A stretch of 63,891 nt of DNA, counting the filler, from Reticulomyxa filosa (taxonomy: Eukaryota; Protista; Foraminifera), in assembly GCA_000512085.1 (NCBI GenBank). It is 24 parts of 24 records of this genome, joined end to end, with 100 filler letters (N's around TTAATTAATTAA, not from the genome) between each part and the next. Parts side by side here need not be neighbours in the genome. Positions count along the whole stretch, not along the records: positions 19,625 to 32,699 come from ASPP01006036.1; 23 more parts are not named here. One strand, given 5' to 3'. Shown one piece after another: positions 19,625-35,000 of this stretch. The translations under genes and the position numbers were made by a program. The stretch's first letter is position 1; every line of letters starts with the position of its first letter. The notes under the pieces were generated by a model. It was not told the DNA's origin. It saw only the letters and a program-made list of their open reading frames with translations, and ran no database searches.

Positions 19625-21249
19625 TTTTTTTTTTTTTTTTGGGACACATTAATAAATAAATGAATACCATATTGTTTTTTGCTGTCCTCTTTGGCAATAT
19701 GTTGTAGAATTTGTTTCTCGTCATCTTGGTCGGCATCGGAAATAGTAAGCTCTTTGCCATCCAAATTGGACAGACCATGTTGCGCCAAATACGAATCACT
19801 TTCTTGTGGTAAAAAGTCGTGGACGATCCACTTAGCGACGGCTCTTTCACCTTCGTTGGTCTGTTCAGTGTTTTTGCTGGCATCGTTCAAATAAGCTCTT
19901 CGAGCATTTGTCGCAATGGATGTAGTCTGCGACAGTGTGCTCATTTCTCCGACAGTGCCGACATCGTCTCCAAACGGCAGTACTGACGTCGAACTAGTCC
20001 CAACTATGCCAACCGCGGCCGAAGACGACAGACAGGAGTTCATTTGAGTTTGTACCTGTTGCAACATTTTCAACACATGTTCGATCTGTTGCACGCTCTC
20101 CACGCTTGCCTCTGTTATTGCCTCGTTATTGGCTTTGTGCAATTTGCCAAGCATTTGACTTGCTTGTGCCAACACACGTCGCTGCGTTTCCATAGCGTGA
20201 CGCCAGTTGTCTACGCTGTCCGCACTTCGAGCGCTGGACGCACTTCGAATGCTGTGTCTCTTGGCATTTGGATTCGTTGAATTGCCATTCGCGGCACGTA
20301 AGGACGAGCGCAAGTACTTCAAACGACTGGCGGTCAATGTGAATCCAGTTGCGTTTGCCCCGCTGCCGGGATGGCCGTTGTTGCTGTTCCGCTGAACGCG
20401 AGTGGCTTCCCAGTCCGATGTCATTTCTGGCATTTCCTCGTATCCTTCGAGGTCCGATCGGATGTGTTCAATTTGATTGGACATGTTTTGTTGGACCATT
20501 TCGAGCTCGTGAAGGGCTAAAAACACAATCAATCACACGTTTGCACGACAACACTTGCAAAAAAAAAAGCCTGCGCCTTTCCGTGTGAGGAAACAAACAG
20601 ACACAATGAACACGAACATTGCGAATGAGGATCATCGTGCGATGGGTGTTGTCCCAAAGTGGACAATTGTTGCACCGCTTGGCCAATTTGGATTTGGTAA
20701 TTTTCCAAACTTTGTAATATACTTGCTATTTCTTGCTTTCTGTTATCGACCTCTTTTTCAAGGTACTCCACCTCATTCAAAAGGCTTTGAACATCTACGT
20801 CATGGTGGCTTAATGGTTCTTTTCTTTTTATGTGTGCGTTATTTTGTTGGAAAGTTACAAATAATCTAAAAAAAAAAAAATATATATGTATATATATATA
20901 GTAACGATGGGTCTTTGAGGAAATTTGCAAAGCGATTGGTTTCGCTACAGCGCAACGCCATGGCAAGCATCTCTTTTGCTTCTTTGATTTGCTTCGTCCA
21001 AAGCAAACGCACTAAATACCTCATGCAACGTGTGGCGTGGAGTTGTTTGGCATACACGTCCTCCCCGCCCGTGGCCTTGCTACGCTTTGGTGAAAATGGC
21101 GACTCATGCAACAGAAATTTTTTGAACTCGGTATGTGCCTGCTCATACATTGGGTCCAGTTGGATTGCAATTTCGTAATGTTCGCCTGCTTCGTCATAGT
21201 TGTTCATGTTGTGCTTTAAAAAAAGTGCTGTCACGGGAGTCACAATTTG

Positions 21250-21280
<31 letters not shown>

Positions 21281-22380
21281 AAATTCAAAGACAGAAAAAA
21301 AAAAGCTACGACTGCAGTAGAAGAGCAAATGGAGTCCATTGACAAAAGAAAAGCACACCATAGTTGAAATGTCGCGTTGCATTTTGTGGGTCCAATTTGA
21401 TCGCTTCTTTGTAATGGTAGTTGGCGGTGGTGTATTCCTTAAAGTGCTTCTTCAACAAGTTGGCTATGTTGGGTGCGCTCGTCCATTATTGGCATCGAGT
21501 TCGAGTGCCGCTGCAAAATTTTTTCGTGCCTCATTGTAGTTATGTAACTGCTGTTCGAGCAGCAGTCCATAATTGTTGTAATAGGCTGCGTGCTTCGGTT
21601 TCAATTCGATAGCTTTGCGGTAATGCACTTCTGCTTGCCTATAATCACTAGTACATTTATACCACAAACAGTAATCCATTTTTATTTTTTTTAGGGGACA
21701 CGTGAAAGTCTGCGGTAATAAAGGTTCTCAAAAAAAAAAAAAAAAAAAAAGTTGTGAAGGTATACGTATATTGAAAACGAATAAAAAAAACTGAAAGTAA
21801 TTTTTATAAAGAATTGCCCAATTGTAATGGGCACTTGCATTCTGTGGGTCGTCTTGGACACAAAGTTGGTACTGTTGTAATGCATCGGCGTGTCTTTGCA
21901 AGTGATCGTGCAGCAATACTGCATACAAATTTCGTACACGCGATCGAAACAATCGCAGCTCACGAAATAAATCCCCTCTTGGCGTATTGCTGTTGGATAG
22001 ACTACCTTCTACTTCTTCATTTACGTTTGCATAACTGTTGTTGATTTTTGCATTGCTTGTGTCTCCACCTGTCGTTTCTTTCGGTGATCCTTTCTGTTGG
22101 ATTGCTGTTGTTGGAAATCGTAATCGCTCGAATTGGGTATTCACGTGTTGCAAGTTGTTCAAACACAATGTCTCACATTGGTTATACTCGCGATGTCGAA
22201 TATAGTTCTTCCATTGCCGAAGAAATTGGAAATACAAATCTTGGTACTGTTATGTACGATTGATTGTTTCGTGCTTTTGGAGTTACTGTTGTTAAAAAAC
22301 TTACTCCTCTCTTTTCTAAAAAAAAATAATCCCAACACCTCTTGAGTATGCCTTGATGTTTTCCTGGAGCGGCGATTCAT
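19625..22380 (-). CDS. TPR-repeat protein with coiled coil and possible C-terminal SAM-like domain (multi-exon, 3'-partial)
   Basis: TPR units AHYNWAILYK..., AEVHYRKAIELKPKHAAYYNNYGLLL, ARKNFAAALELD, HYKEAIKLDPQN and HYEIAIQLDP. Coiled coil LLNEVEYLEKEVDNRKQEI. GT-AG introns. 1-nt frameshift at about 21472. Confidence 0.82.
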
Positions 22381-22857
22381 CGTTCTTACAAGTTGCTAAA
22401 ATCTGAATCTTTTAGCTCTCCTTGTCAAACCAGCTTGTTTACCCTTTTCCCAAAACCTTTCGGCAAAAAGCTGTCTAACCTTGTACATAAAAATATTAAA
22501 ACACTTATTTTACACCTTCCCTAAATTTCAAAGTAGCAACTTAAAAATAAACGGATTTACAGTATCTTAGGCTACTTTTAATATCGATAATTTTGCATCC
22601 CCTCAATTAGTTAATATACAACTAAATTAATAATTACACTACTAACAAATATTTTATAACTAGCTTTCATTTTGTTTTCTTTTAAGACACTATTTAAACA
22701 AAAATAAGTTAATTTGATCTTTTAAAAAATTTTTAATAAATGAGAATTTTGCAATTTAACAGTGAAATAGTAGGTCAAATTTTTATTCTCATCAACTGTC
22801 TTGCAGAATGCACTACATAAAAAATGTTTACAGTAATATATTTGCTAAAATAATAGG

Positions 22858-24149
22858 TCAATCTATACACTCTGAAGGGACGCCAAAAGCAATTGTTTTG
22901 CATCTTTTATTGTGTTTTTTTGGCAATCTAACAACAACGACTTCACCGTTTGTGCTGCCAACGTATACAATACCATTACAATAAGAAAAAGTGTTAATTG
23001 TCTTTTTTAATGCAATTGATTCTTGATAATGTGAAAGCAATTGATGTTGGTACGAATATTTTGGAGTGCCACAAGAACACCATTCCCAAATTCGTAGGTT
23101 TTGATCCCTGGAGCCAGAAAGTATATTACAATTGTGTAGTTTTGGAACAAGAGGAACAAAACAGCATTTTGAAATTGCTTGATTGTGTCTGGAAAAAGTA
23201 TAAAGTGGATCTTTCAAATTACGCAAATCCCACAATTGTAGATCGCAGCCATGTCCTTATTCAGTTATTTATAAAAAATCTCGAAATAACTAGATGCTGT
23301 TTTTAAAAAAGGAGAATAAAAAAAAAATACTATTCACATACCATTAAATCCATTAAAACCAACACACAACATGTTCCTATCTGCAACATCAATATCCATG
23401 GTCAGAGGTATTTGAACATGTCCAATAGCATAAGTACAATGTGAACATGACCTTGCGTCCCAAAAGTAAAACTTCAAATCTTCAGAGACTTGAATCAGGG
23501 ATTGATTTGGCAATATGCACATTGCACGAGCTAAATTTCCATCGTTACTACTGCTGTAGATAATTTTATTTGTTTCCAAATCCCAGTAGTTAGTGGTACA
23601 ATCCCGTCCACTAGACCAAAGCCTCTGATTGAGTTCATCCACAGCAATGGATAAAACTCCAAGCGAATGTCCGGATAATGTTTTGCTGTGACGAACGTTG
23701 TATTCATATCTGTTACGATCGACTGGCAGCTGCCACATTTTTATATCACCGTCACGAGACGCGGATATTAGACAATGCATCTGTGAAGAATACTTCAATT
23801 GAGTTATTGCTCCCTTATGTCCATTTACGTGTGTATGCTCATCCACTTTGGTGGTCCATTTGTTCAAAACTATATGTCCGTCAATGTCACCAGAGACATA
23901 GCTGTCTAAGTTTATTCCGCAGATGTCTGTGATGGTATCTGTGTGAAAAGATGGAAACATTTGTCCACAGCTATTTTTTTCAATTTACTTCCACAAAACA
24001 TTGTTGTAATCAAGAATTTCTTTTAAAATTTAAGAAGCGGGTATTTTCTCATAATCTATCTAGGATTCTTGTTTTCATTGTGCAAGTCAATTATTGTTCA
24101 CTGTTATGTAAACAAACATGTGCATCACATCATCTGAGGAGCTGCTCAT
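22858..24149 (-). CDS. WD40 protein, WDR31-like (3 exons)
   Basis: MSSSSDDVMHI|CGQMFPSFHTDTIT...GHKGAITQL...SASRD...GHSLGV...SSGRDCT...LIQVSEDLKFYFWDAR...NGFNG|HGCDLQLWDLR...HNQAISKCCFVP. Repeat order and the QxSED and NGFxGxGCxxxLWDLR motifs match WDR31. Confidence 0.75.
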
Positions 24150-24562
24150 TTTTCAAATCTTCTATAATTTGTTAAGTTTTTGAGGTCACTTTTATCTTGG
24201 CTTTCAATTTATTGTGTAAGCGCTGCCCAGACACCAACTTATTTTTTTGCCAAAAAGCAGCAAAACACATTTTCGTGTTTATGTTCAAAAATTGAAAGAA
24301 TATCTTAAATATTCAAAGTATATTATGAGTAATATTAATATGATCTAGATATTTTTGTTCTTTAAATTCAGTAAAATAAACATATACATAACCAACTAGA
24401 AATTGTCATTAAAAAATTTCAATATAATGTAATATAGCTACACGTCATCTAAAACTTTAAATCATTTTTCAATAAGCTTCGGTAAAACTGAAAACCCAAA
24501 CTTTAAAATTACTGTTGAAAAAATGTGTCAAAAAAGAGAAATACTCAATAAACAGCTTATTT

Positions 24563-27500
24563 TTATTTATACCATTTCTTGACAATTCTTTCAACTTCAG
24601 CATTCTGCTTGATTTCTGCGTTAATGGTAGTGCACATCTTCCTTGCCACAATCAATTCCTTTTCTAAACTTTCGATTTGCTTTTCCAAAAATTGTTTTTC
24701 ATTTTTTGTGTCTAAACATTCCATGACAAAGACCCAATCAAAGCAATATGAGCGCAGTTTACAAAACAAATATTTTTTTTTTGCAAAACGATAAACACCT
24801 GACAGCTGTAATTGAAGTCTATCTGCCAGTGCTTGCGTTTCAGCTTGCTTCAGACAGAGTTCTTTAATTTCGGCCTCTCTTTCACAAAGCTTGCTTTGGT
24901 TCGTAACATTACCAAAAAAATCCAATGAAAAATTGGAACTCAAAGAGAAAGCAGAAAAAAAACAACAGTAGGAACAAAAAAGAAACTAAACATAGAAACG
25001 CTTTCAAATTCTTTGGAAGTTTTCATTAGCACTCGGTTTCGGATTTGCGTATGGCGAAACTGTTGTTGCAGTTGCTCCATTTCCGCTTCCTTTTCTTTTA
25101 ACTTAGTTGTAAGTTCTTTTGCTTGCTTTTGTAGCACTCGAAATGCCGGCAAATCATATTTGTCAAATATAATGTTATCCTGTTTTTGTTATGATTGTTT
25201 GTTAATCCCTCAGTTGACATCACTTTCGTTATATAATTACAGATACGTATCCCTCACATAATACCATGTTATCTTGTTTGCTCATTTGGGAGGTTAATGT
25301 AAGTAATTTGTGTTTCAAATTGACATTCTTGACCGTTAGTGACTGATTTGTTTCTTGAAGTAGTTCAATTTTTTTATGTAGCAACACTATCTCTTTGTCG
25401 TATTCTCCAAAAATATCGCTGTAACATGGTTTCTGTGCTTTCAATCTTCGCAATTCTTCTGCCAACTTGCAATTTTCCAATCGCAAATTCGATATCTGTT
25501 TCATTGCGTTCATCAAAAAAAAAAGTTCATCCAATTGCAAATAAATGCAAAAAAATAATTAAAAAGGGATCAATTAACGTGCACATTTTTTGGGGGGGGG
25601 GGAGGATACACATTTGCTGCTGTCTCTTGCACCTCAAGTTCTAAGCAAGCCGCTTCGTCCATCTCTTGTGATGGGTCCATTAGATTCTCAACTTTTTCCA
25701 TCATACTTGCCGAATCATCTAATTCGGCACTTTGGCAATCTGATCCGCTTTTGCTTCTTGTGTCATGTTGATCGACTTCTGTTTCATAGTTTGCGTACTC
25801 ATCCGTCCTTGACGTTGTCTCATTTTCAATTTCTTCTTGTATTGTCTTCAATTGTTTTTCCGAATTAGCAATATGTGATCGTATTAATTGTCGATTTACT
25901 TTCTAGAGTTTTGTTGTATGTTTGTTTTTGTTGTTGCACAAAACCAATTGGAGCTACCAGTTTTTTTTTGAGATCATGATCACTGCTTTTTAACTGCATT
26001 TTGTTTTTGATCCATGGACATGAATAAATCCAGGTTTTCTTCTTCAGGGACACAGTACTACAAGCAAGTTTTTATTTTTATTTTTATTTGTTCTCCCCTT
26101 TACACGACTCAACAGAAATATCGAACTGATGAAGAAGATGCCGAGTGCCATTGGTGTGAAAAAGCATCAAAACTTAGCATTGTTGATGAGGGTACTAGTT
26201 CTTTTTTATTAAAACGTGTTTTTACACAAGGCACATGAATCGCAAGTGTTCTAAATTAATTTTGTTAAATCATTTTTTATACTTTAATTGCAAATCAAAA
26301 AATAAATCGTATTTTCTTTCATAAATGACAAAATGTTCAATTTATACCTCGAAAGGGCTTGAATTGTTCTCAAAGTGCTTTGATACTGTAGCAAATCATC
26401 GAAAACAAAGCCGATAAATAACGTTTCGCAATTATTTGTAATAATGGGTGCAATTACTTGATTTAATAAAGTTTCGTGAATAACACAATTCATGATATCA
26501 GTAGGATGCTTTATTGAAGCTTCTTCATGTTTATTTTTTTTGACATGCACTTTTGGACTAGATCTACTATTGCAAATAGAAGAATTGTGAGACGTTCGAG
26601 AGTGAATATTACAAAGAAAGTGTAGCATTTTGTTAAATGAGAACAAGTTTATATTTCTTTGTTTGTTTTGTTCTACTGTTTTTCGAGATATCATCGTTCT
26701 ATTAGAGGTACTTGAGTAATGGTATCCAACCAGGTCAATAAACTGTTCTGATATAAAAAAAATTCTTTTTGAATGTATTTTGGCTTTGTTTTGTTTTCCT
26801 AACATGTAAAGAAGCAACGGTGTTGTTAATGCAATCATATAATTTAAGTCTCACAAACATTGCAGCTTTGCTCGGACGTGTTGAAAAAACCTCTTCCTCT
26901 GTTCGGATACATTGTGTAGTGTTAAACAGTATTTTGGAGCGAGTGTCAAAAGGGCACATACATGAACTTTAAAAAATAAAAAAACAATACTGTTGATTTT
27001 TTCTGAATTCGTTTTACCTTTTTTGAAATTTGAGCTATTTTCTCGGCACATGTCCCAAACATAGCAAACTTCACTCCAGGTTGAGGTTTGGACAACTACG
27101 GGTTCAAAAGCGGTACTGCTCTTCGTCTTGTTGTTTCCTGAAAGATTAGCAGCCGAGGTAGACTTTTGCAATAGGTCTTTTATTTCATTACTGTTGTCTG
27201 AGATTTCCCAACAAGACAAGACGAGGACATATCGAAAAGATGGCTCTTCGTCGATTTTACGAAATATGTTTGCAACGACAGTCCCAAACAAACCGTCACA
27301 AGATAGAACTTGGGACCCATTTGGGTGGCCAAAAAGGAATGTGGTTTTGCCCGATTGGACCACACCATAAGTGACAATGTTTTGATTGAAGCCATCCAAC
27401 AAATTGGAGGTAATATCCGTTGCCATTTGTGCAAATATTCGTTCATTGGATACTGAAGAGTTGTAAAACCGACTAATTTCATAACTACGCGTGTCGTTCA

Positions 27501-27764
27501 AATTGGATGGGTTTTGTACCTTAATTGTTGTGTCGCTTTCTTCAAATCGTACTTTATCTGCACTTGTGCCATTAAATTGCAGGTCTTGGCTTCTACAAGA
27601 TAAAAGGGGAGATATTTAAATTTTAAAAAAATACGAAATGCAACCACAATTTCGGCAAACCTTATAAACACTAAAAAGTTTCCTAGTTTCACATTTCTGC
27701 TGCCCCCAAATGAGTTTAGCTCGTTTGTCAAATCCAACAATTCAGGATCTAGGCAATCATTCAT
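24563..27764 (-). CDS. Highly divergent kinesin-like protein (N-terminal motor domain plus coiled-coil tail), multi-exon
   Basis: NFLVFIR; LLDGFNQNIVTYGVVQSGKT (P-loop); LVLSCWEIS...IKDLL; ASLH|FIDLVG; NINLFSFNKML; ETLLNQVIAPIITNNCETLFIG...STLRTI. The motifs fall in kinesin order. A long heptad tail runs to the stop at 24563. Confidence 0.8.
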
Positions 27765-28458
27765 CAATGTGCAATATATGCAAGAGGCTTTTAAAAATGT
27801 TCCCACTGACGACTTTAATATCATATTATAACTCAGAATGTTAAAGAATCTGATGGGTTTTGTAGTTATTAATTGTTTGAATGATAAAAGTTTCAAATTA
27901 TAAATTTTAATTCCATTTCTCTCTATTTTCTGTTTAAAAAATTGAACAAAGTAAAACTTTTCTGGTTTTTTTCTCATTTCAAAATTTTGATTTTTTCTTA
28001 CAAAAAAAGAAATAAAAACAAGAAAGCAAAATGGTTAGTAAGTGTAAAAAAGATTTTCGTGTTTCACAAGAACTTTCATTATACTTTTAGAGTGCTGTTC
28101 TCCACATTTTAAACTTTTTTGAAATAGAGCCATAGAAAATTTGGAGTCGAATGACAACACTACCTCATGATCCAGTACAGATCCATCAGACGTACAAATA
28201 ACGCAAAAATAGCTCCCAGTTTCTACCAAAAGTCTTATTTAAATTTTAAATAGTTTGAAAATAATAGAGCGAAAGAAAGTTAAGACCATCACAAAAGACT
28301 TGCGTCATCTGGCAAAGTGCAGCACGATGTGCTTTCGTTTAAAAAATGTAGGTTACGCACGTGTTTAGTAAAAAACACAGAACTTGCAGCAAGTCAAGTA
28401 AACACAAAACACGCTCCACAAAAGGGCGCCAAAGCTACTGTCAGAAGCTGCATAAAAC

Positions 28459-29893
28459 ATGATCAAGTCAGATGAAGAGGATCTCACGTTATCCAGACGT
28501 TTTTCAATGGGTTCGCCCAGAACGGAGATCGTGTCAGATATCCAATTTGACCTGACTCAAAAATTCGCCCAGTACTTGCTCCCTTCCGACAAGACCAAAC
28601 TTGAGCGTCAGCTGGAGATGCAGTCAAATGAATTGCAAAAGCAGGTTTTTCATTTAAGACCTTTTTTGTGCACACATATGTCATGAACAAAAAAAAAATT
28701 ACAATATCAAAAACAAACAAAAAGTGGCAATTTTATCGTCATATTAGTGGACTGATTAAAGTAGCAGGTGAAACAACGGACGAAGCACATGCTCGTAATT
28801 GTACGAACAAAGCCTTGGGATACCTGAGCGTATTCAAAAAGCAAGTTGATGTAAACTTCCATGGACGAGCAGACGGATGGACGTATTTGCATTTGGCCTG
28901 TTATTTCGACAACGTGACCTTCCTTCGATTTATTCTATTGGTTTTCAAAAATATTGAAATTGATAGCTTGGATAAGTTTGGGCAAACTCCATTGGATTTG
29001 GCGGTTGAACGACAAAACAATGATGCCATTGCTGCTTTGGAAGCTTTCAAGGTTTTCTTTTTTTTTTTGTGACGTCCAATCTCTGAATCATATTTGAGAA
29101 CGAGGACGGTGTATTTATACATGCTATATGTATATGTACCAAAATTTTTTTTTTAATGTCTTTTGAAAGAACTCGAACGAAGAGAGTCGTGACATTGAAA
29201 GTTTCACCGAGGAATTTGAGATCCTTCAGTCAAAATACAAAGTGTTCAAGTCCACGTTAACTGACGTATACAATCAAGACCAAAAAAAAGTGGATGAATT
29301 TATGGGCACTTTGTGTGAAGTCATGAGTCGGTTGTTAGAGACAAGAAAGCCCTTTTCCGGAGATTTACTTTTCTTTGCAATGAGTCATGAATGCGAAAAC
29401 GCGAGTAATGTGGTGTTGTCGACAGAAGAGAATAAGGAAAAAGAAAAGAAAGAAGAAGAAGATAAACAAGTGGTTCATGTTGAACATGCATTAGATAAAA
29501 AGATTCAAGACATGTTGAATATCGAAACATTGTATGAAAACTGTTGTGATTACGTATGGTTGTCTGAAAATTTGTTGAAGAGCCCCATCTGGTTGCTTAA
29601 GAAAGCCAGCAGCGACTTAAAAGCGACGAGCAATAACTCCAAAGGCTTGTATGACGGTATGGTGTCTCGAGCAAAGAGCGAACAACGAAAAGATCAGTCC
29701 TCGTTGCAAATGGATGTCCGGGCCATTGCTAACAATGATCTCGAAAGCTATCGCGCAATTGTGAACTTCAACGTGCGCAATTCCAAGCATGTAACCAAAG
29801 AACAACAGCGACAAGATAAGATCGTGTATGGAATCAAAGGTGAATTGACCGAGTCTGAATTGGCTTATGTGTCACTGTACAGGTTTGTTTTCA

Positions 29894-29925
<32 letters not shown>

Positions 29926-32002
29926 GTCAATAACCAACGTAAAATGTCTAAAGCTGTCTGTGCACTAATCCGATATACTCTTTGACAGCACTGACATGCT
30001 TTTCAACGCTTCTCAAATGTACGATTTGGACACATATTTGTCGCAATTGTTGCTGCGCGCTCATATTTTGAATACCCCATTTCAGCAAACCGTGCTGTCG
30101 TTGTTCGACAAGAACTCGGATCACGCCAATGGAAAAAATGTGTGGGTTGAGTTTGGTCCCGTCAAAAAAGTCAAGCGCTGTCGTGAAAAGGCTGAGTTGG
30201 AATGTATGTAACATGTGTTGTGTATTATTGCTTTGGCTTTATTAAAGGGCTAAATCGGGATCAAATTAAATAAACAGACAATGGGTTCCCATTCCCGACC
30301 AGTGCTCATTTGTTGGATTTGCTGAGATGCACGTTGATATTTGACAACTTTAAAGACATGCTAAAGGGTATTCACACGCTTTTGACTTATTGCAAAAAGT
30401 ATGAACATGTCGTCAATCGTAAACACCTTTCGACAAAGTCTTTGGTCAAATTCTCCATTTTGCGCGTAAAAAATGGATTCAAAGGGTACATTGACACTGT
30501 GATGAAAAAAAGAAAAACTTCTAAAACAGATATTCAAACGACGTCACAAGAAGAAAAAAAAGAAGAGTTGATTGTTCCTGATCGTCTCTGTGATATCAAG
30601 TTTAACATCATTGTTACCTTGTTTGACGAAGATTCCAAGCCTATCAGTTTGATTGGTGAAGTTAAGAGATCAAACCAACAAAAAATTTTTTTTTATTGGT
30701 TTGGTTTGTTTACGTGCTTTCAAATTGAGCCTAATGTTGGAATAGATTCAAGTGCTACTACAACGAATGGCACAACACAAAGCCAGAATTCACGAGTTGT
30801 ATGAAGTCGAACGTATCGAAAGCTTTTTCATCAAGTGCGATGAAAAGATAAAGTCAAAGTCCATTGAAAAAAAAATATCCATGGCTGGCATTCGAGCTCC
30901 ACTCTTGGCGCCTTTGATCGTCAATCATCCGTTCCAATTTCAAGACTTTTTGATCAAGCATCTTGTTCAGCAATCATCCAGCCAAAATGATGACGAAAAC
31001 AAAGTTTACATTTTTTAATTTTCATTTGAAGAAAAAAAACACACATTACAGCTGTGGTTTATTTATACAGCAAGAAAATTTCTTATTAAAAATGCTTAAA
31101 CAACCATCTCTTCAATCGAATTTATTAGACAATATGCTATCCTTGATTCCAGAACAACGAATTCCAGGATTGTTGCTGCTACGCGATAATGTATGTTTGT
31201 TTTGCCACTTTTCAAAATATATGGAGGGTGGTACATATCCAAAAATTGGTTATATATACGTATGTGCGAGCAGGATCAACGAACGACGCTACATTATGTG
31301 TGCTACTATCAATCAAAAAGTAATATTGAAGTTTTTGTAAATATATGCCGAAAGCAAGCAAATCCTTCTGGATGGCAACAGATCGACTCCATAACATTCC
31401 GGTGATGTTGGCTTTCAATGCTAACAAAAATACTCCAAGTATTGGAGCATTGTTAAGATGTATGCCCGTCGATATCGATTTTTGGAATTGTCGAGATTCT
31501 GATGGACGAAATGCTTTGGCTTGTGCATTTCATCAGCGCTATGACTTGATCAAAATTTTAGAAGAAATTCCCAAAACGTTGTCTGACGAAGAGTGGTTTT
31601 GGAAATGTACTGTGAATCCTCAAGTTGATTTTGAAATTTTTTCTCTCTTTTTTTTCCTCGAATAATGCTATATTTGTATCCAAAAAAAATGTATCTTAGA
31701 ACTCCGAAAATCCTCTGCATTTGGTGTTTAAGTATCTATTTCGAACAAATCCAATTGAACCCTTAAAGCCTTTGCTGAAAATACTACCAAAATCGGTGTT
31801 TGTTGCTTTCGTAAATCAGAAAAATCGAGTTTTGGAATGAAAAATACTGTTTTTTATTCTTATTTTGTGTTCATTATTGAATATATACAAATATCTTATT
31901 TTTTATTTTGGTGAATAGGAGGGTAGGACACCTTTGGCTTTGGAAAAGGAAAAAAATATAACAATACTGGAGGATCACCTCAAAAATATCGAAAAAGCTT
32001 GA
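28459..32002 (+). CDS. Ankyrin - RelA/SpoT-like nucleotidyltransferase - ankyrin protein (multi-exon)
   Basis: N-terminal ANK (DGWTYLHLAC; FGQTPLDLAV). Spliced core GPVKKVKRCREKAELE|YNGFPFPTSAHLLDLLRCTLIF...ILRVKNGF...DIKFNIIV...LIGE|IQVLLQRMAQHKARIHELYEVER. C-terminal ANK-like units (QRTTLHYVC, GRNALACAF, ENPLHLVF, GRTPLAL). Stop TGA at 32000-32002. Start codon uncertain. Confidence 0.78.
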
Positions 32003-35000
32003 TCAGCGCATGTTTTTATGTTTGCACTATTAAAAAATATTAGTACTGACATTGACAGTCTCAGGCGTTGTGTTTTACTATCTCAACAAAGTGGTAGACA
32101 GTTAATTGAATAATGCTGCCTACCATCTTGTTAGTGAATGAAATAGATTAAACATGTTACCCTTTGTTTACATTATGCTGATACCAAAGTAAAACAAAAT
32201 GAGAATTCTGTAGTTGAAATCTGTGTCTTCTTAATTCCGTTAATCCTTAGGCAACATTAAAAAAGAACAAAAGATAAATACTATTGGCAAGTAAGGCTCA
32301 AATTTGATATGAAAATTTTTGTCCCACGAATTAAATTTCAAGTTAGTTAAAAAGGCTATACAGTCGAGTATATTCTAACTTGTCAGTAATCTTTGCATAA
32401 TTGAAAAATAGAGTGCTTATAGTCTCTAAACAGAAACACAAAAGAATTGGGCAGATTGGAGAGCATGTAATAAAAAAACTCATTAACATTTGAGAATATC
32501 TTTGTTCGTCAATTTACATTCATGAATCAATCACTGTTTGCAGAACTCTTGAATTTTTTTTTCCAAAGCAACAGGATTTGCACCCAGCAGAGCAGCCACT
32601 GACTTTCCGTTTTTAATAAATTCAAACGTCTATGATTTGTGTTTGAAAAGTCAATTGTGGATGTGCACATAAAATGTCTGTTTGTCACAAAAGAAAAAAN
32701 NNNNNNNNNNNNNNNNNNNNNNNNNNNNNNNNNNNNNNNNNNNTTAATTAATTAANNNNNNNNNNNNNNNNNNNNNNNNNNNNNNNNNNNNNNNNNNNNA
32801 TTTTTAAAAACAGGTTCAAAAAAATTAAAAAATGACCCACAAGCTCAAGAAAATGACCCACAATAGTAAATCTTAGTGAATATTCCTTTGCAACATTTCT
32901 ATACAAAATAGTCACTTTGAAAGTTGATATAATACTAATTATTTTGCTCTTCTTGTCATTTCTTTTCTTTGTTTTCACGCGTTGTCAAACAAAAAAAAGG
33001 AAAAAAGTTCCTTTTTTGAAAACTGTCATCAATTTTTTGATAAATTGTGAATTTTATATATTGATTGTTTATGCATATCTTAAATGCAAAAACATGATTT
33101 TGATTGTTAAATATTAGTATTGATTATATGAAATACCAAAATTTGTATGATTGATATTTTTTACTTCATCCGACTGAGGAACAGTTTTCTTTGATTCAAT
33201 TACAAACAAAAAACGACAATGGGAGTTCTAGTATTTTTAGATTGGAATCACTATGTGAGATAACAAAAAAAAATACTTGTCACAAAAAAAAATCTAGATC
33301 CTTTCTTCTATTCAATATATATTTTTTTTTGAACAAACTGATAAAAGAGTTCAACGATTTTTTTAACAATTACAAAAATACGATTGATGTATCAAAACAT
33401 TTTTTGATTAAAACTGGGACATAAATGTTGCTTTAATTCAACTTTTTTGGTTATATTTATCAAAAAAACTATTTTAAGCAGGCTTAATTAGAAATCTGCA
33501 CATTAGAACAGTTCATTGCAAACTTTAATTTGATCAATAGCAGCCCTATCGTTTTCTTTGAACAGAACTTAGTTATGAGATATCAATCAGTAAACAAAGA
33601 AAAACATATCATTTTCTATGTTATCACCTAACAAGTACTTTTCCAAAGACGATGTATTTTTTTGTTCAAGTCACATCCATCATCGATGGAAAGTACTGAC
33701 AATCATTGCTTAAGAGAAAAACAATAATTTACATCAAATGACTATGCAGAGTCAAGAGAAAGTATTGTTATTAAATAAGCAGTTATTTCGCAACATACAA
33801 ATGTCAATTACTCCATTTTTCACTTAATTATCAAAATTATTTGCGTATATTCTTTATTAATTCATTAAATGATTTTTTATTAATGTAAAATCATTTATGA
33901 TTGGATTGCAATCCTTGAAAATCGTGTTACTTTTTCGTTGTTACAATGTATAGACACTTCTTCTTGTTAAAGCATGTCTCCTTTATCGCTAATCAGCTTA
34001 GACTCGCGTTTGAAATTGGCTTCGTCCAACAAATAAACTTCTTCCTGTATTTACAATACAAGTTTTTCATTTCAATACTGAGTCAAAATAATTCATACTT
34101 TGATGCTTTTGAAATAAAGTTTTTATGGGAAATATATTTGGAATTTGTCCTGTATCAGCACGCATGCTGATCATTTTCATGTTTGTACGAACACGAGTGT
34201 ATAATTTACATAACGAAGAGTCCAATTGCAAAATACACATACGAAGTACAAGAATTATATTTGCATATCTTACAGTATGAGATGTTTTTGATATAGAACT
34301 GCTATCACTGTTTCTTTTTCAAAAAAATATATTCTATTAAACAGACATTTTCTNNNNNNNNNNNNNNNNNNNNNNNNNNNNNNNNNNNNNNNNNNNNTTA
34401 ATTAATTAANNNNNNNNNNNNNNNNNNNNNNNNNNNNNNNNNNNNNNNNNNNNCAAACAGCATACCAACAGCAACTCTTTTCTTAAAAGCAATTAAACGT
34501 ATCATTATTTTAAATATCAAAATTTTGAAATATCAATTAAAAATATCAACAATAAAGAAAATTAGCAACAAAAAAAAAATTTAATATTTAAAAACTACAA
34601 GATTAGTAGATATTTTTTTAAAAAAATTAGGTTTAAATCTTTATTTTTCATGGAGAAAATCGATTCTCTTCATATACTGCCATTTAGATATGCCGGTTTT
34701 TTTTGCAATCTACTGTATTATCTTTAACTTTGCTTATTTTCTTGAAAAATAATAATATGTACAAACTTACTTATATAATCAAATTTTCTTACTAATTTTT
34801 TATTTGTGTGAAACATATTTTTTCAACATTTTCAAATAATTATAAAATAGATCATATTCAATGAAAAGGCAAGCATTTACAAAAGATAATTAATGTAAAC
34901 TCCAATTTCTTTTTTGACAAAGAAAATTATATCTATCATTTTGTATTTTTTGATTTTATCATTACAGATTGTGTTTACAATTAGCAACTGTTGCAAAAGA

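Follow-up and report, generated by a model that had tools for sequence, protein, structure and literature searches.

To our knowledge, RelA/SpoT-type (RSH) synthetases of non-plastid eukaryotic origin are sporadic, being represented by divergent small alarmone synthetases (SAS) and by effector domains of fungal NLR proteins, and none has been characterised biochemically in depth. For the divergent eukaryotic enzymes, divRel[S], Atkinson et al. (2011, PMC3153485) list only a few fungi, Dictyostelium and diatoms, and fungal NLRs carry an N-terminal RelA_SpoT effector domain that is joined to ankyrin (ANK), WD40 or TPR sensors (Dyrka et al. 2014, PMC4986451). In the structure of the toxic SAS (toxSAS) FaRel2 with an ATP analogue, the residues that hold the triphosphate are R64, K66, S70, K74 and R77, of which R64 contacts adenine, ribose and phosphates; D90 holds the Mg2+ ion, the adenine is recognised by E145 and Q147, and the G-loop residue Y128 holds the acceptor; an exchange of the G-loop Tyr for Phe has been used to cripple RSH enzymes, and toxSAS enzymes need that Tyr (PMC11782079). 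Among the small synthetases, the exported enzyme SaEAS (8VX3) has a signal peptide (PMC12691689). Here we analyse RFI_07638 (ETO29486.1, X6NU17_RETFI), a gene of the foraminifer Reticulomyxa filosa whose record is titled "hypothetical protein". It lies in a stretch of 63,891 nucleotides (the window), in which positions 19625-32699 (ASPP01006036.1) correspond to a 13,075-bp R. filosa contig. An initial annotation of this DNA had proposed a RelA/SpoT-type nucleotidyltransferase core between two ankyrin arrays, and our models predict for this core a highly diverged SYNTH fold, shared with a foraminiferal protein family.

The structural assignment was made with an AlphaFold2 model of residues 215-445 of the paralogue RFI_24241, calculated from a 17-row alignment (predicted local distance difference test [pLDDT] of 75, predicted template modelling score [pTM] of 0.67). 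A Foldseek search of the Protein Data Bank (PDB) with this model revealed that the 50 best matches were all RSH synthetases, at a best E value of 5.3e-7 and a probability of 1.0; they included RelQ, RelP, Tas1, FaRel2, RelSeq and one exported synthetase. An exhaustive VIA comparison with 48,161 representative chains, which is independent of Foldseek, returned RSH proteins at each of ranks 1-8, and the leading matches in the viral library BFVD were named RelA/SpoT, YjbM and Tas1. Furthermore, the secondary-structure elements of the core model match those of RelQ one for one in order and number. The ESM Atlas holds its own (ESMFold) model of RFI_24241, which reached a PF04607 cluster with template modelling (TM) scores of 0.57/0.69, and an Atlas search with the AlphaFold2 model did likewise. 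The model of the protein annotated in the window (P0001) also matched small alarmone synthetases first; a stretch of it that derives from a retained intron, described below, had a pLDDT of <50. With RSH proteins first in three structure libraries, the models support the nucleotidyltransferase core of the initial annotation. For RFI_07638, the SYNTH fold is supported by modelling, and RSH synthetases resemble the predicted core more than other nucleotidyltransferases of the Pol-beta type do. Its nearest counterparts are small alarmone synthetases (RelQ, RelP and exported synthetases) and, in sequence detail, Tas1/Apk1.

A comparison with RelA_SpoT by both structure and profile had been proposed along with the initial annotation. 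The structural half placed RSH proteins first, and the profile half gave no significant match. The window gene was searched exon by exon against Pfam and the PDB; otherwise, the queries were the deposited protein, P0001, and paralogues that are intact. At E values up to 10, RelA_SpoT (PF04607) was matched by none of the exon translations, ten full-length homologues and 17 cores, and NCBIfam contained nothing relevant for the family. The core exons, taken one at a time, retrieved nothing from the PDB sequences, nor did a profile of 17 sequences. Alignments of the family by hhalign with E. coli RelA, with RelA fragments together with six plasmid-borne small alarmone synthetases, and with those six alone were never significant; the homologue search from E. 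coli RelA had yielded nothing but close fragments of RelA, without any small synthetase. The motif match claimed earlier is thus not a statistically detectable sequence match in Pfam, NCBIfam, the PDB profile search or hhalign. Two weak sequence signals do appear to agree in direction. A profile of 39 sequences gave one weak match among 177,635 PDB sequences, namely, Tas1 (E value 0.85), in which the family motif GPVK-x3-R-x3-K-x3-DY...D-x-x-R stands opposite A-P-I-K-S-R-E-R-A-M-Q-K-I-N-N-D-Y...D-L-A-R. Similarly, the best hhalign path to the six small synthetases, which was non-significant (P 0.28), is colinear over 118-181 columns; GPVK stands opposite GRVK in it, and the Asp, Tyr, Glu-x-Gln and His of the family each fall opposite the like residues of the synthetases.

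Conservation was counted over 40 domain copies. The positions that are conserved in at least 85% of them are, in RFI_24241 numbering:

Syn1-like helix: P267, K269, R273 and K277
Start of strand beta2: D297, R300 and C301
Strand beta3: R339, K341, N342 and F344
beta3-beta4 loop and strand beta4: Y360, D362, K364 and N366
Strand beta5: E384 and Q386
Helix after beta5: K396, H400, Y403 and R407

The acidic residues, whose conservation across homologues had been in question, are nearly invariant (Asp in 37 of 38 copies and Glu in 38 of 39), and the Gln of Glu-x-Gln is present in 35 of 39. In the models, the Asp is located at the start of beta2 and Glu-x-Gln on beta5. Counts in the last helix, H..Y..R, were 30/32 for His, 29/31 for Tyr and 29/30 for Arg. 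The Syn1 consensus R-x-K-x3-S-x3-K is not followed as such: the family has G-P-V-K-x3-R-C-x2-K, with an invariant Arg (29/29) in place of Ser. Both Syn1 lysines, which the initial annotation considered kept, stand (28/29 each), and the first Arg does not: 26 of 29 copies have Pro there. Judged from the register of the predicted strands, the family would keep the equivalents of FaRel2 K66, K74, D90, E145, Q147 and Y128, with S70 changed to Arg, R64 to Pro and the Syn2 Arg shifted by two places; the Lys/Arg/Lys set, the Asp and Glu-x-Gln would then be equivalent to RSH donor-site residues. At the G-loop position, 33 of 39 copies have Tyr, 4 have Phe and 2 have Leu. The copies with Leu are RFI_07638 (codon CTC, 30586-30588) and the sister gene RFI_28712, and RFI_07638 keeps all mapped family residues except this Tyr. 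Two deviations that had been pointed out earlier were real, namely, the charged insert after NGF, which at 36 residues following KNGF is the longest acceptor-loop insert, and the RLCDIK replacement, which reflects Leu for the family Tyr.

The limits of exons and introns in RFI_07638 were read from three-frame translation and splice-site context. The region surrounding the gene is AT-rich (G+C 31-41%), and its introns are short and of the GT...AG type. The features are as follows:

28459..28644, plus strand: candidate first exon, an open frame with an ATG at 28459, in which Pfam finds nothing
28767..29051, plus strand: N-terminal ankyrin exon with 2-3 units, from Pfam; donor GT at 29052
Between the ankyrin exon 28767-29051 and the exon 29170-29882, plus strand: intron of 118 nucleotides, from three-frame translation and splice context
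29170..29882, plus strand: exon for the all-helical extension before the core (D-x-x-W...L.S.IW, RQD....G), from tblastn with the homologues P0010, P0012, P0013, P0017 and P0007 and from the alignment
29883..29988, plus strand: intron of 106 nucleotides, GT...AG, with a long T tract; the phase fits (AG+C = Ser) and the join is as in P0001
29989..30203, plus strand: exon for helix alpha1, strand beta1 and the Syn1-like GPVK-x3-RC-x2-K (GPVK at 30155-30166), from tblastn; aligned to Tas1 residues 275-312
30204..30277, plus strand: intron of 74 nucleotides, GTATGT...CAG; T+AC gives the Tyr in AELEYNGFPFP, as in P0001, where the family consensus is D/E-Y
30278..30660, plus strand: core exon with DLLRC, RVKNGF, the 36-residue charged loop insert, RLCDIKFN and G-E, from phmmer, conservation and model strands
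30661..30745, plus strand: intron of 85 nucleotides, GTTAAG...TAG, which splits the Glu-x-Gln strand, from the homologue motif GE(I/V)Q and a paralogue intron at the same position
30746..31003, plus strand: exon with I-Q of the Glu-x-Gln strand, the H..YE..R helix and conserved C-terminal helices (MAGI...PLIVNHP), from tblastn with P0002 (65% identity), P0007, P0010 and P0011
~31071-31187, 31274-31614, 31700-31837 and 31919-31999, with a stop at 32000-32002, plus strand: putative C-terminal exons, degenerate and ankyrin-like, from open frames; this part of the model is uncertain

Sequence comparison supports the core of this gene structure. Seven homologues match by tblastn exactly the exons of 29170-31003, and in the paralogue RFI_28712 (ASPP01024808.1) GE|IQ is interrupted at the same point by an intron of 100 nucleotides, flanked by conserved exons and itself unalignable. 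Without any break, GE(V/I)Q is encoded in the paralogue RFI_24241 and in the EukProt proteins of Bolivina argentea and Nonionella stella, two species for which transcriptomics studies exist (PMC8153729). Across 29989-31003, the GT-AG joins of the initial annotation are correct, and its motif strings were recovered exon by exon: GPVKKVKRCREKA starts at 30155, DLLRCTLIF at 30316, RVKNGF occupies 30463-30480, RLCDIKFN 30583-30606, GE|IQVLL 30655-30660 and 30746 onwards, and H..YE..R 30791-30814. The putative catalytic residues are thereby placed at 30316-30318 (Asp), 30658-30660 (Glu) and 30749-30751 (Gln). At the 5' end, no strong canonical pair of donor and acceptor joins 28459-28644 in frame to the ankyrin exon. 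A run of ~40 T at 29887-29926 fills most of the 5' half of intron 29883-29988, and shorter runs of T or A mark the other introns of the gene.

The public protein P0001 has 760 residues; the core exon 30278-30660, compared by phmmer with 1.84 billion representative proteins, matched it at 100% identity. Its gene model starts at the ATG at 28683 and ends at 31340, with splices after 31003 that differ from the exons read here. In addition, it keeps part of intron 30661-30745, so that 14 residues (about 561-574) replace Ile-Gln; the protein reads GEVKRSNQQKIFFYWFVLLQ where its homologues have GE(I/V)Q(F/I)LL. Because part of this intron is retained, the putative catalytic Glu-x-Gln strand is broken in the deposited protein, which lacks both this strand and the C-terminal repeats. 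The gene model given here thus corrects a public one in which a retained intron had destroyed the predicted catalytic strand.

On the N-terminal side of the core, the ankyrin repeats noted in the initial annotation are real and exceed the Pfam gathering scores. In the N-terminal exon, Ank_2 was matched with an E value of 3.3e-8 and 34.4 bits (cut-off, 27.3) over 28767-29053, Ank_5 with 5.2e-8 and 33.5 bits (27) and Ank_3 with 1.8e-7 and 31.3 bits (22.3); residues 47-119 of P0001 gave the same three matches. The 4-5 ankyrin-like units that had been described downstream fared less well. Their existence is weakly supported by an Ank_2 match of 14.9 bits at 31345-31614, below the cut-off (E value 0.04), and by weak similarity between 31274-31402 and the C-terminal repeats of the homologues P0007 and P0012 (E values of 0.003-0.006 in a 39-sequence database). 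The exons also contain a break of the reading frame between about 31330 and 31405, between the halves of one ankyrin-like unit; it can be mended either by a 35-nucleotide GT...AG intron at 31321-31355 or by assuming a one-base insertion or deletion or an assembly error. The intron at 31321-31355, if read, would remove a helix-like segment. The C-terminus of RFI_07638 probably consists of degenerate ankyrin-like repeats.

Between the N-terminal repeats and the core lies a helical region of ~270 residues, which tblastn and alignment show to be conserved across the family and for which pLDDT is mostly 75-94. Long Foldseek alignments to RelA and RelSeq had hinted that it might be a degenerate HD hydrolase; this was rejected, as VIA aligns long RSHs over the synthetase domain alone. 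The homologue P0010 (L010:3271-6612) has a Cys/His-rich insertion in its helical region, at residues ~300-360, with a zinc-finger-like pattern (C-x-C...C-x2-C...H-C...C-x2-C). Pfam found no HD, TGS or ACT domain in the RFI_07638 exons, P0001 or the homologues, which together with the restricted alignment of long RSHs bears out the absence of these domains reported earlier. Pfam likewise found no NTPase domain (NACHT or NB-ARC) in P0001 or ten homologues. Neither candidate N-terminus of RFI_07638 has a transit or signal peptide evident by eye; no predictor was run.

The best explanation of these data, to which we assign a probability of about 0.6, is a diverged RSH-type SYNTH enzyme that transfers pyrophosphate to a nucleotide acceptor and would be targeted or gated by its repeats. 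RFI_07638 would be a multi-domain cytosolic protein composed of ankyrin repeats, the helical extension of ~270 residues, the SYNTH core and, probably, degenerate ankyrin-like repeats. ATP-Mg would bind at a donor site formed by the basic residues of GPVK-x3-R-x3-K, the beta2 Asp (DxxRC) and the Glu-x-Gln of beta5. The 3'-OH of an acceptor that carries phosphate, most probably a purine nucleotide, would then receive the beta,gamma-pyrophosphate, resulting in a (p)ppApp- or (p)ppGpp-like product. The acceptor is expected in a basic pocket (R-x-K-N, D-x-K-x-N, K and H..Y..R) together with the enlarged beta3-beta4 loop, and targeting or gating would be the task of the repeats and helical extension. 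We judge an ATP-dependent transfer of pyrophosphate to a nucleotide to be the most likely chemistry of the family because the donor-site set and the basic acceptor pocket are strongly conserved and Tas1, which is highly active, has the same odd motif variants. The exchange of the acceptor-stacking Tyr for Leu calls for caution on the activity of RFI_07638; in this protein and RFI_28712, activity may be weak or directed at a different acceptor.

Several observations weigh against an RSH-type enzyme. Model confidence is moderate and the alignments are shallow, with 2 of 5 paralogue models below a pLDDT of 60, and neither PF04607 nor NCBIfam nor the PDB chains gave a significant match, the E value for Tas1 being 0.85 and the P value of the hhalign path 0.28. 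The position of FaRel2 R64 is Pro in the large majority of copies (26/29), Arg-Cys stands where Syn2 has Gly-x-Arg, Arg-Thr no longer follows Glu-x-Gln, and RFI_07638 itself has Leu at the G-loop Tyr position. The SYNTH-like fold might have been kept for nucleotide binding or scaffolding, without catalysis, at least in RFI_07638 and its sister. Such a pseudoenzyme would accord with the family-wide change of the first Syn1 Arg to Pro, the exchange of the acceptor-loop Tyr for Leu in 2 of 39 copies (RFI_07638 and RFI_28712), the 36-residue charged insert in the same loop and a similarity to active RSHs that is undetectable by sequence; some long RSHs do carry inactive synthetase or hydrolase halves. 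We nevertheless regard it as unlikely. About 20 polar or charged positions of the predicted cleft, including the Asp, Glu-x-Gln and three basic helix residues, are conserved at ≥85% in proteins of ~30% identity, a pattern that fits a working active site. In the stretch that aligns, the extremely active Tas1 has A-P-I-K...R...K and D-L-A-R as equivalent variants, and a comparison of RFI_07638 with RFI_28712 over 177 aligned codons points to purifying selection on both paralogues (proportion of nonsynonymous differences, pN, 0.24 versus a saturated synonymous proportion, pS, of 0.83).

Foraminifera could employ a Tas1/Apk1-like pyrophosphokinase as a cytosolic, repeat-gated effector that, once triggered, causes a flood of (p)ppApp-type nucleotides or a drain on ATP, which we consider decidedly unlikely; if true, it would represent a eukaryotic alarmone-based immune or cell-death switch without plastid or bacterial context, possibly present also in those protists whose unnamed Atlas clusters combine the fold with ANK or TPR repeats. 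It is quite improbable that the protein is a toxin-like effector that, once an ankyrin ligand triggers it, 3'-pyrophosphorylates tRNA or other RNA, as do CapRel, FaRel2 and PhRel2, or modifies a protein, leading to cell death or defence: the small synthetases whose products are free nucleotides score above CapRel or FaRel2, and no NACHT/NB-ARC domain, immunity gene or defence signature was seen in the protein or its neighbours. We give very little credence to the idea that the core is not RSH-related at all, that is, a generic Pol-beta-type nucleotidyltransferase fold or an artefact of shallow alignments with a coincidental motif order. RSH proteins lead every library and align over 40-55 more residues than other nucleotidyltransferases, two alignments and target sequences agree with a separately made ESMFold model, and the elements of secondary structure correspond one for one to those of RelQ; moreover, the lone sub-threshold PDB sequence match is itself an RSH protein, Tas1, and RSH proteins make up well under 1/1000 of PDB sequences.

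A phmmer search with the single core exon retrieved 16 proteins and a profile search added 23, resulting in a total of about 40 domain copies; a word-filtered homologue search from one paralogue had contributed a single further member. Among named sequences, the family is restricted to Foraminifera: its members are RFI_07638, RFI_28712, RFI_24241 and RFI_29956 of R. filosa, which thus has at least four paralogues, two proteins of Bolivina argentea and one of Nonionella stella. The remaining members come from ENA and MERC marine assemblies, one Tara scaffold among them. Ankyrin repeats are common in the family, on one or both sides of the core. The Tara Oceans scaffold (L009:1886-6607) contains an uninterrupted open reading frame (ORF) of 1573 residues with two SYNTH-like cores and a large ankyrin array between them, and the adjoining ORF encodes a PH domain with ankyrin repeats. 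Motif searches, from single proteins as well as from alignments, of 185,579 prokaryotic genomes, IMG/VR and JGI metagenomes revealed no relatives of the family, and tblastn of the family core against phage and plasmid collections gave chance matches alone. An origin from giant viruses or bacteria, considered in view of the long intronless ORFs on ENA contigs, was not supported, as the neighbours encode PH plus ankyrin and SAP domains and the searches revealed no relatives in viruses or prokaryotes. Unnamed ESM Atlas clusters labelled Bacillariophyta or Ciliophora, some of them with TPR_10/TPR_12 or ankyrin fusions, share the fold at TM scores of 0.53-0.67; as leads only, these predicted structures hint at a wider set of undetected SYNTH-like domains in protists.

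The neighbours of RFI_07638 on the minus strand (19627-27501) are ordinary eukaryotic genes of cytoskeletal and repeat type, without a defence signature. They include a kinesin motor fragment at 26854-27501 (E value 3.8e-15), pieces of a WD40 beta-propeller at 22861-23960, TPR repeats at 20869-22237 and coiled-coil segments.

The family described here is unrecognised by Pfam and NCBIfam, yet keeps the putative catalytic Asp, Glu-x-Gln and basic residues along with Tas1-like motif variants. Structure-based searches are therefore needed to map the alarmone-synthetase class in protists. Constructs and the Asp, Glu and Tyr/Leu positions are now available to ask about cytosolic alarmone-like nucleotides, and their acceptor, in a heterotrophic protist; none of the papers in the collection searched connects Reticulomyxa with ppGpp.

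Compared with RelQ/SAS1 and RelP/SAS2 of Bacillota (5DED, 5DEC, 6EWZ and 6FGK), the family shows 12-17% identity and no significant profile match. It has Pro for the first Syn1 Arg, DxxRC for DxxGxR, Y-x-D-x-K-x-N for G-Y-x-S-x-H and no Arg-Thr after Glu-x-Gln. RelQ and RelP stand alone as homotetramers, whereas the foraminiferal proteins are eukaryotic, encoded with introns, and have a long variable beta3-beta4 loop and fusions to ankyrin repeats and a 270-residue helical region. The sequence link to Tas1/Apk1, the (p)ppApp synthetase of Pseudomonas aeruginosa type VI secretion (6OX6), is not significant. Tas1 is a bacterial toxin that is secreted and paired with an immunity protein, whereas in the foraminiferal proteins neither a secretion signal nor an immunity gene was seen, and ankyrin repeats are present instead. 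Similarly, no delivery module with a cognate immunity gene was found, the architecture being ANK-helical-core-ANK-like and the neighbours kinesin, WD40 and TPR. The toxSAS CapRel, FaRel2 and PhRel2, which are tRNA 3'-pyrophosphokinases, differ from the family, which has no pseudo-zinc-finger antitoxin domain or antitoxin gene; FaRel2 scores below the nucleotide-making synthetases, and the toxSAS G-loop Tyr corresponds to Leu in RFI_07638. In long RSHs, namely RelA, SpoT, Rel as well as plant RSH1-4, an HD domain precedes and TGS/ACT domains follow the synthetase domain, and the family has none of these.

What the family shares with fungal NLRs and divRel[S] is an RSH synthetase-type domain in a non-plastid protein of a eukaryote. 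However, PF04607 or RSH HMMs recognise the domains of the fungal NLRs and divRel but not the foraminiferal family, whose lineage is Rhizaria. Furthermore, fungal NLRs have a central NACHT/NB-ARC domain between effector and repeats, whereas Pfam detects no NTPase domain in P0001 and ten homologues. The foraminiferal family is thus best filed as a highly diverged form of a known kind of enzyme, new in its architecture and lineage and not in the type of system.

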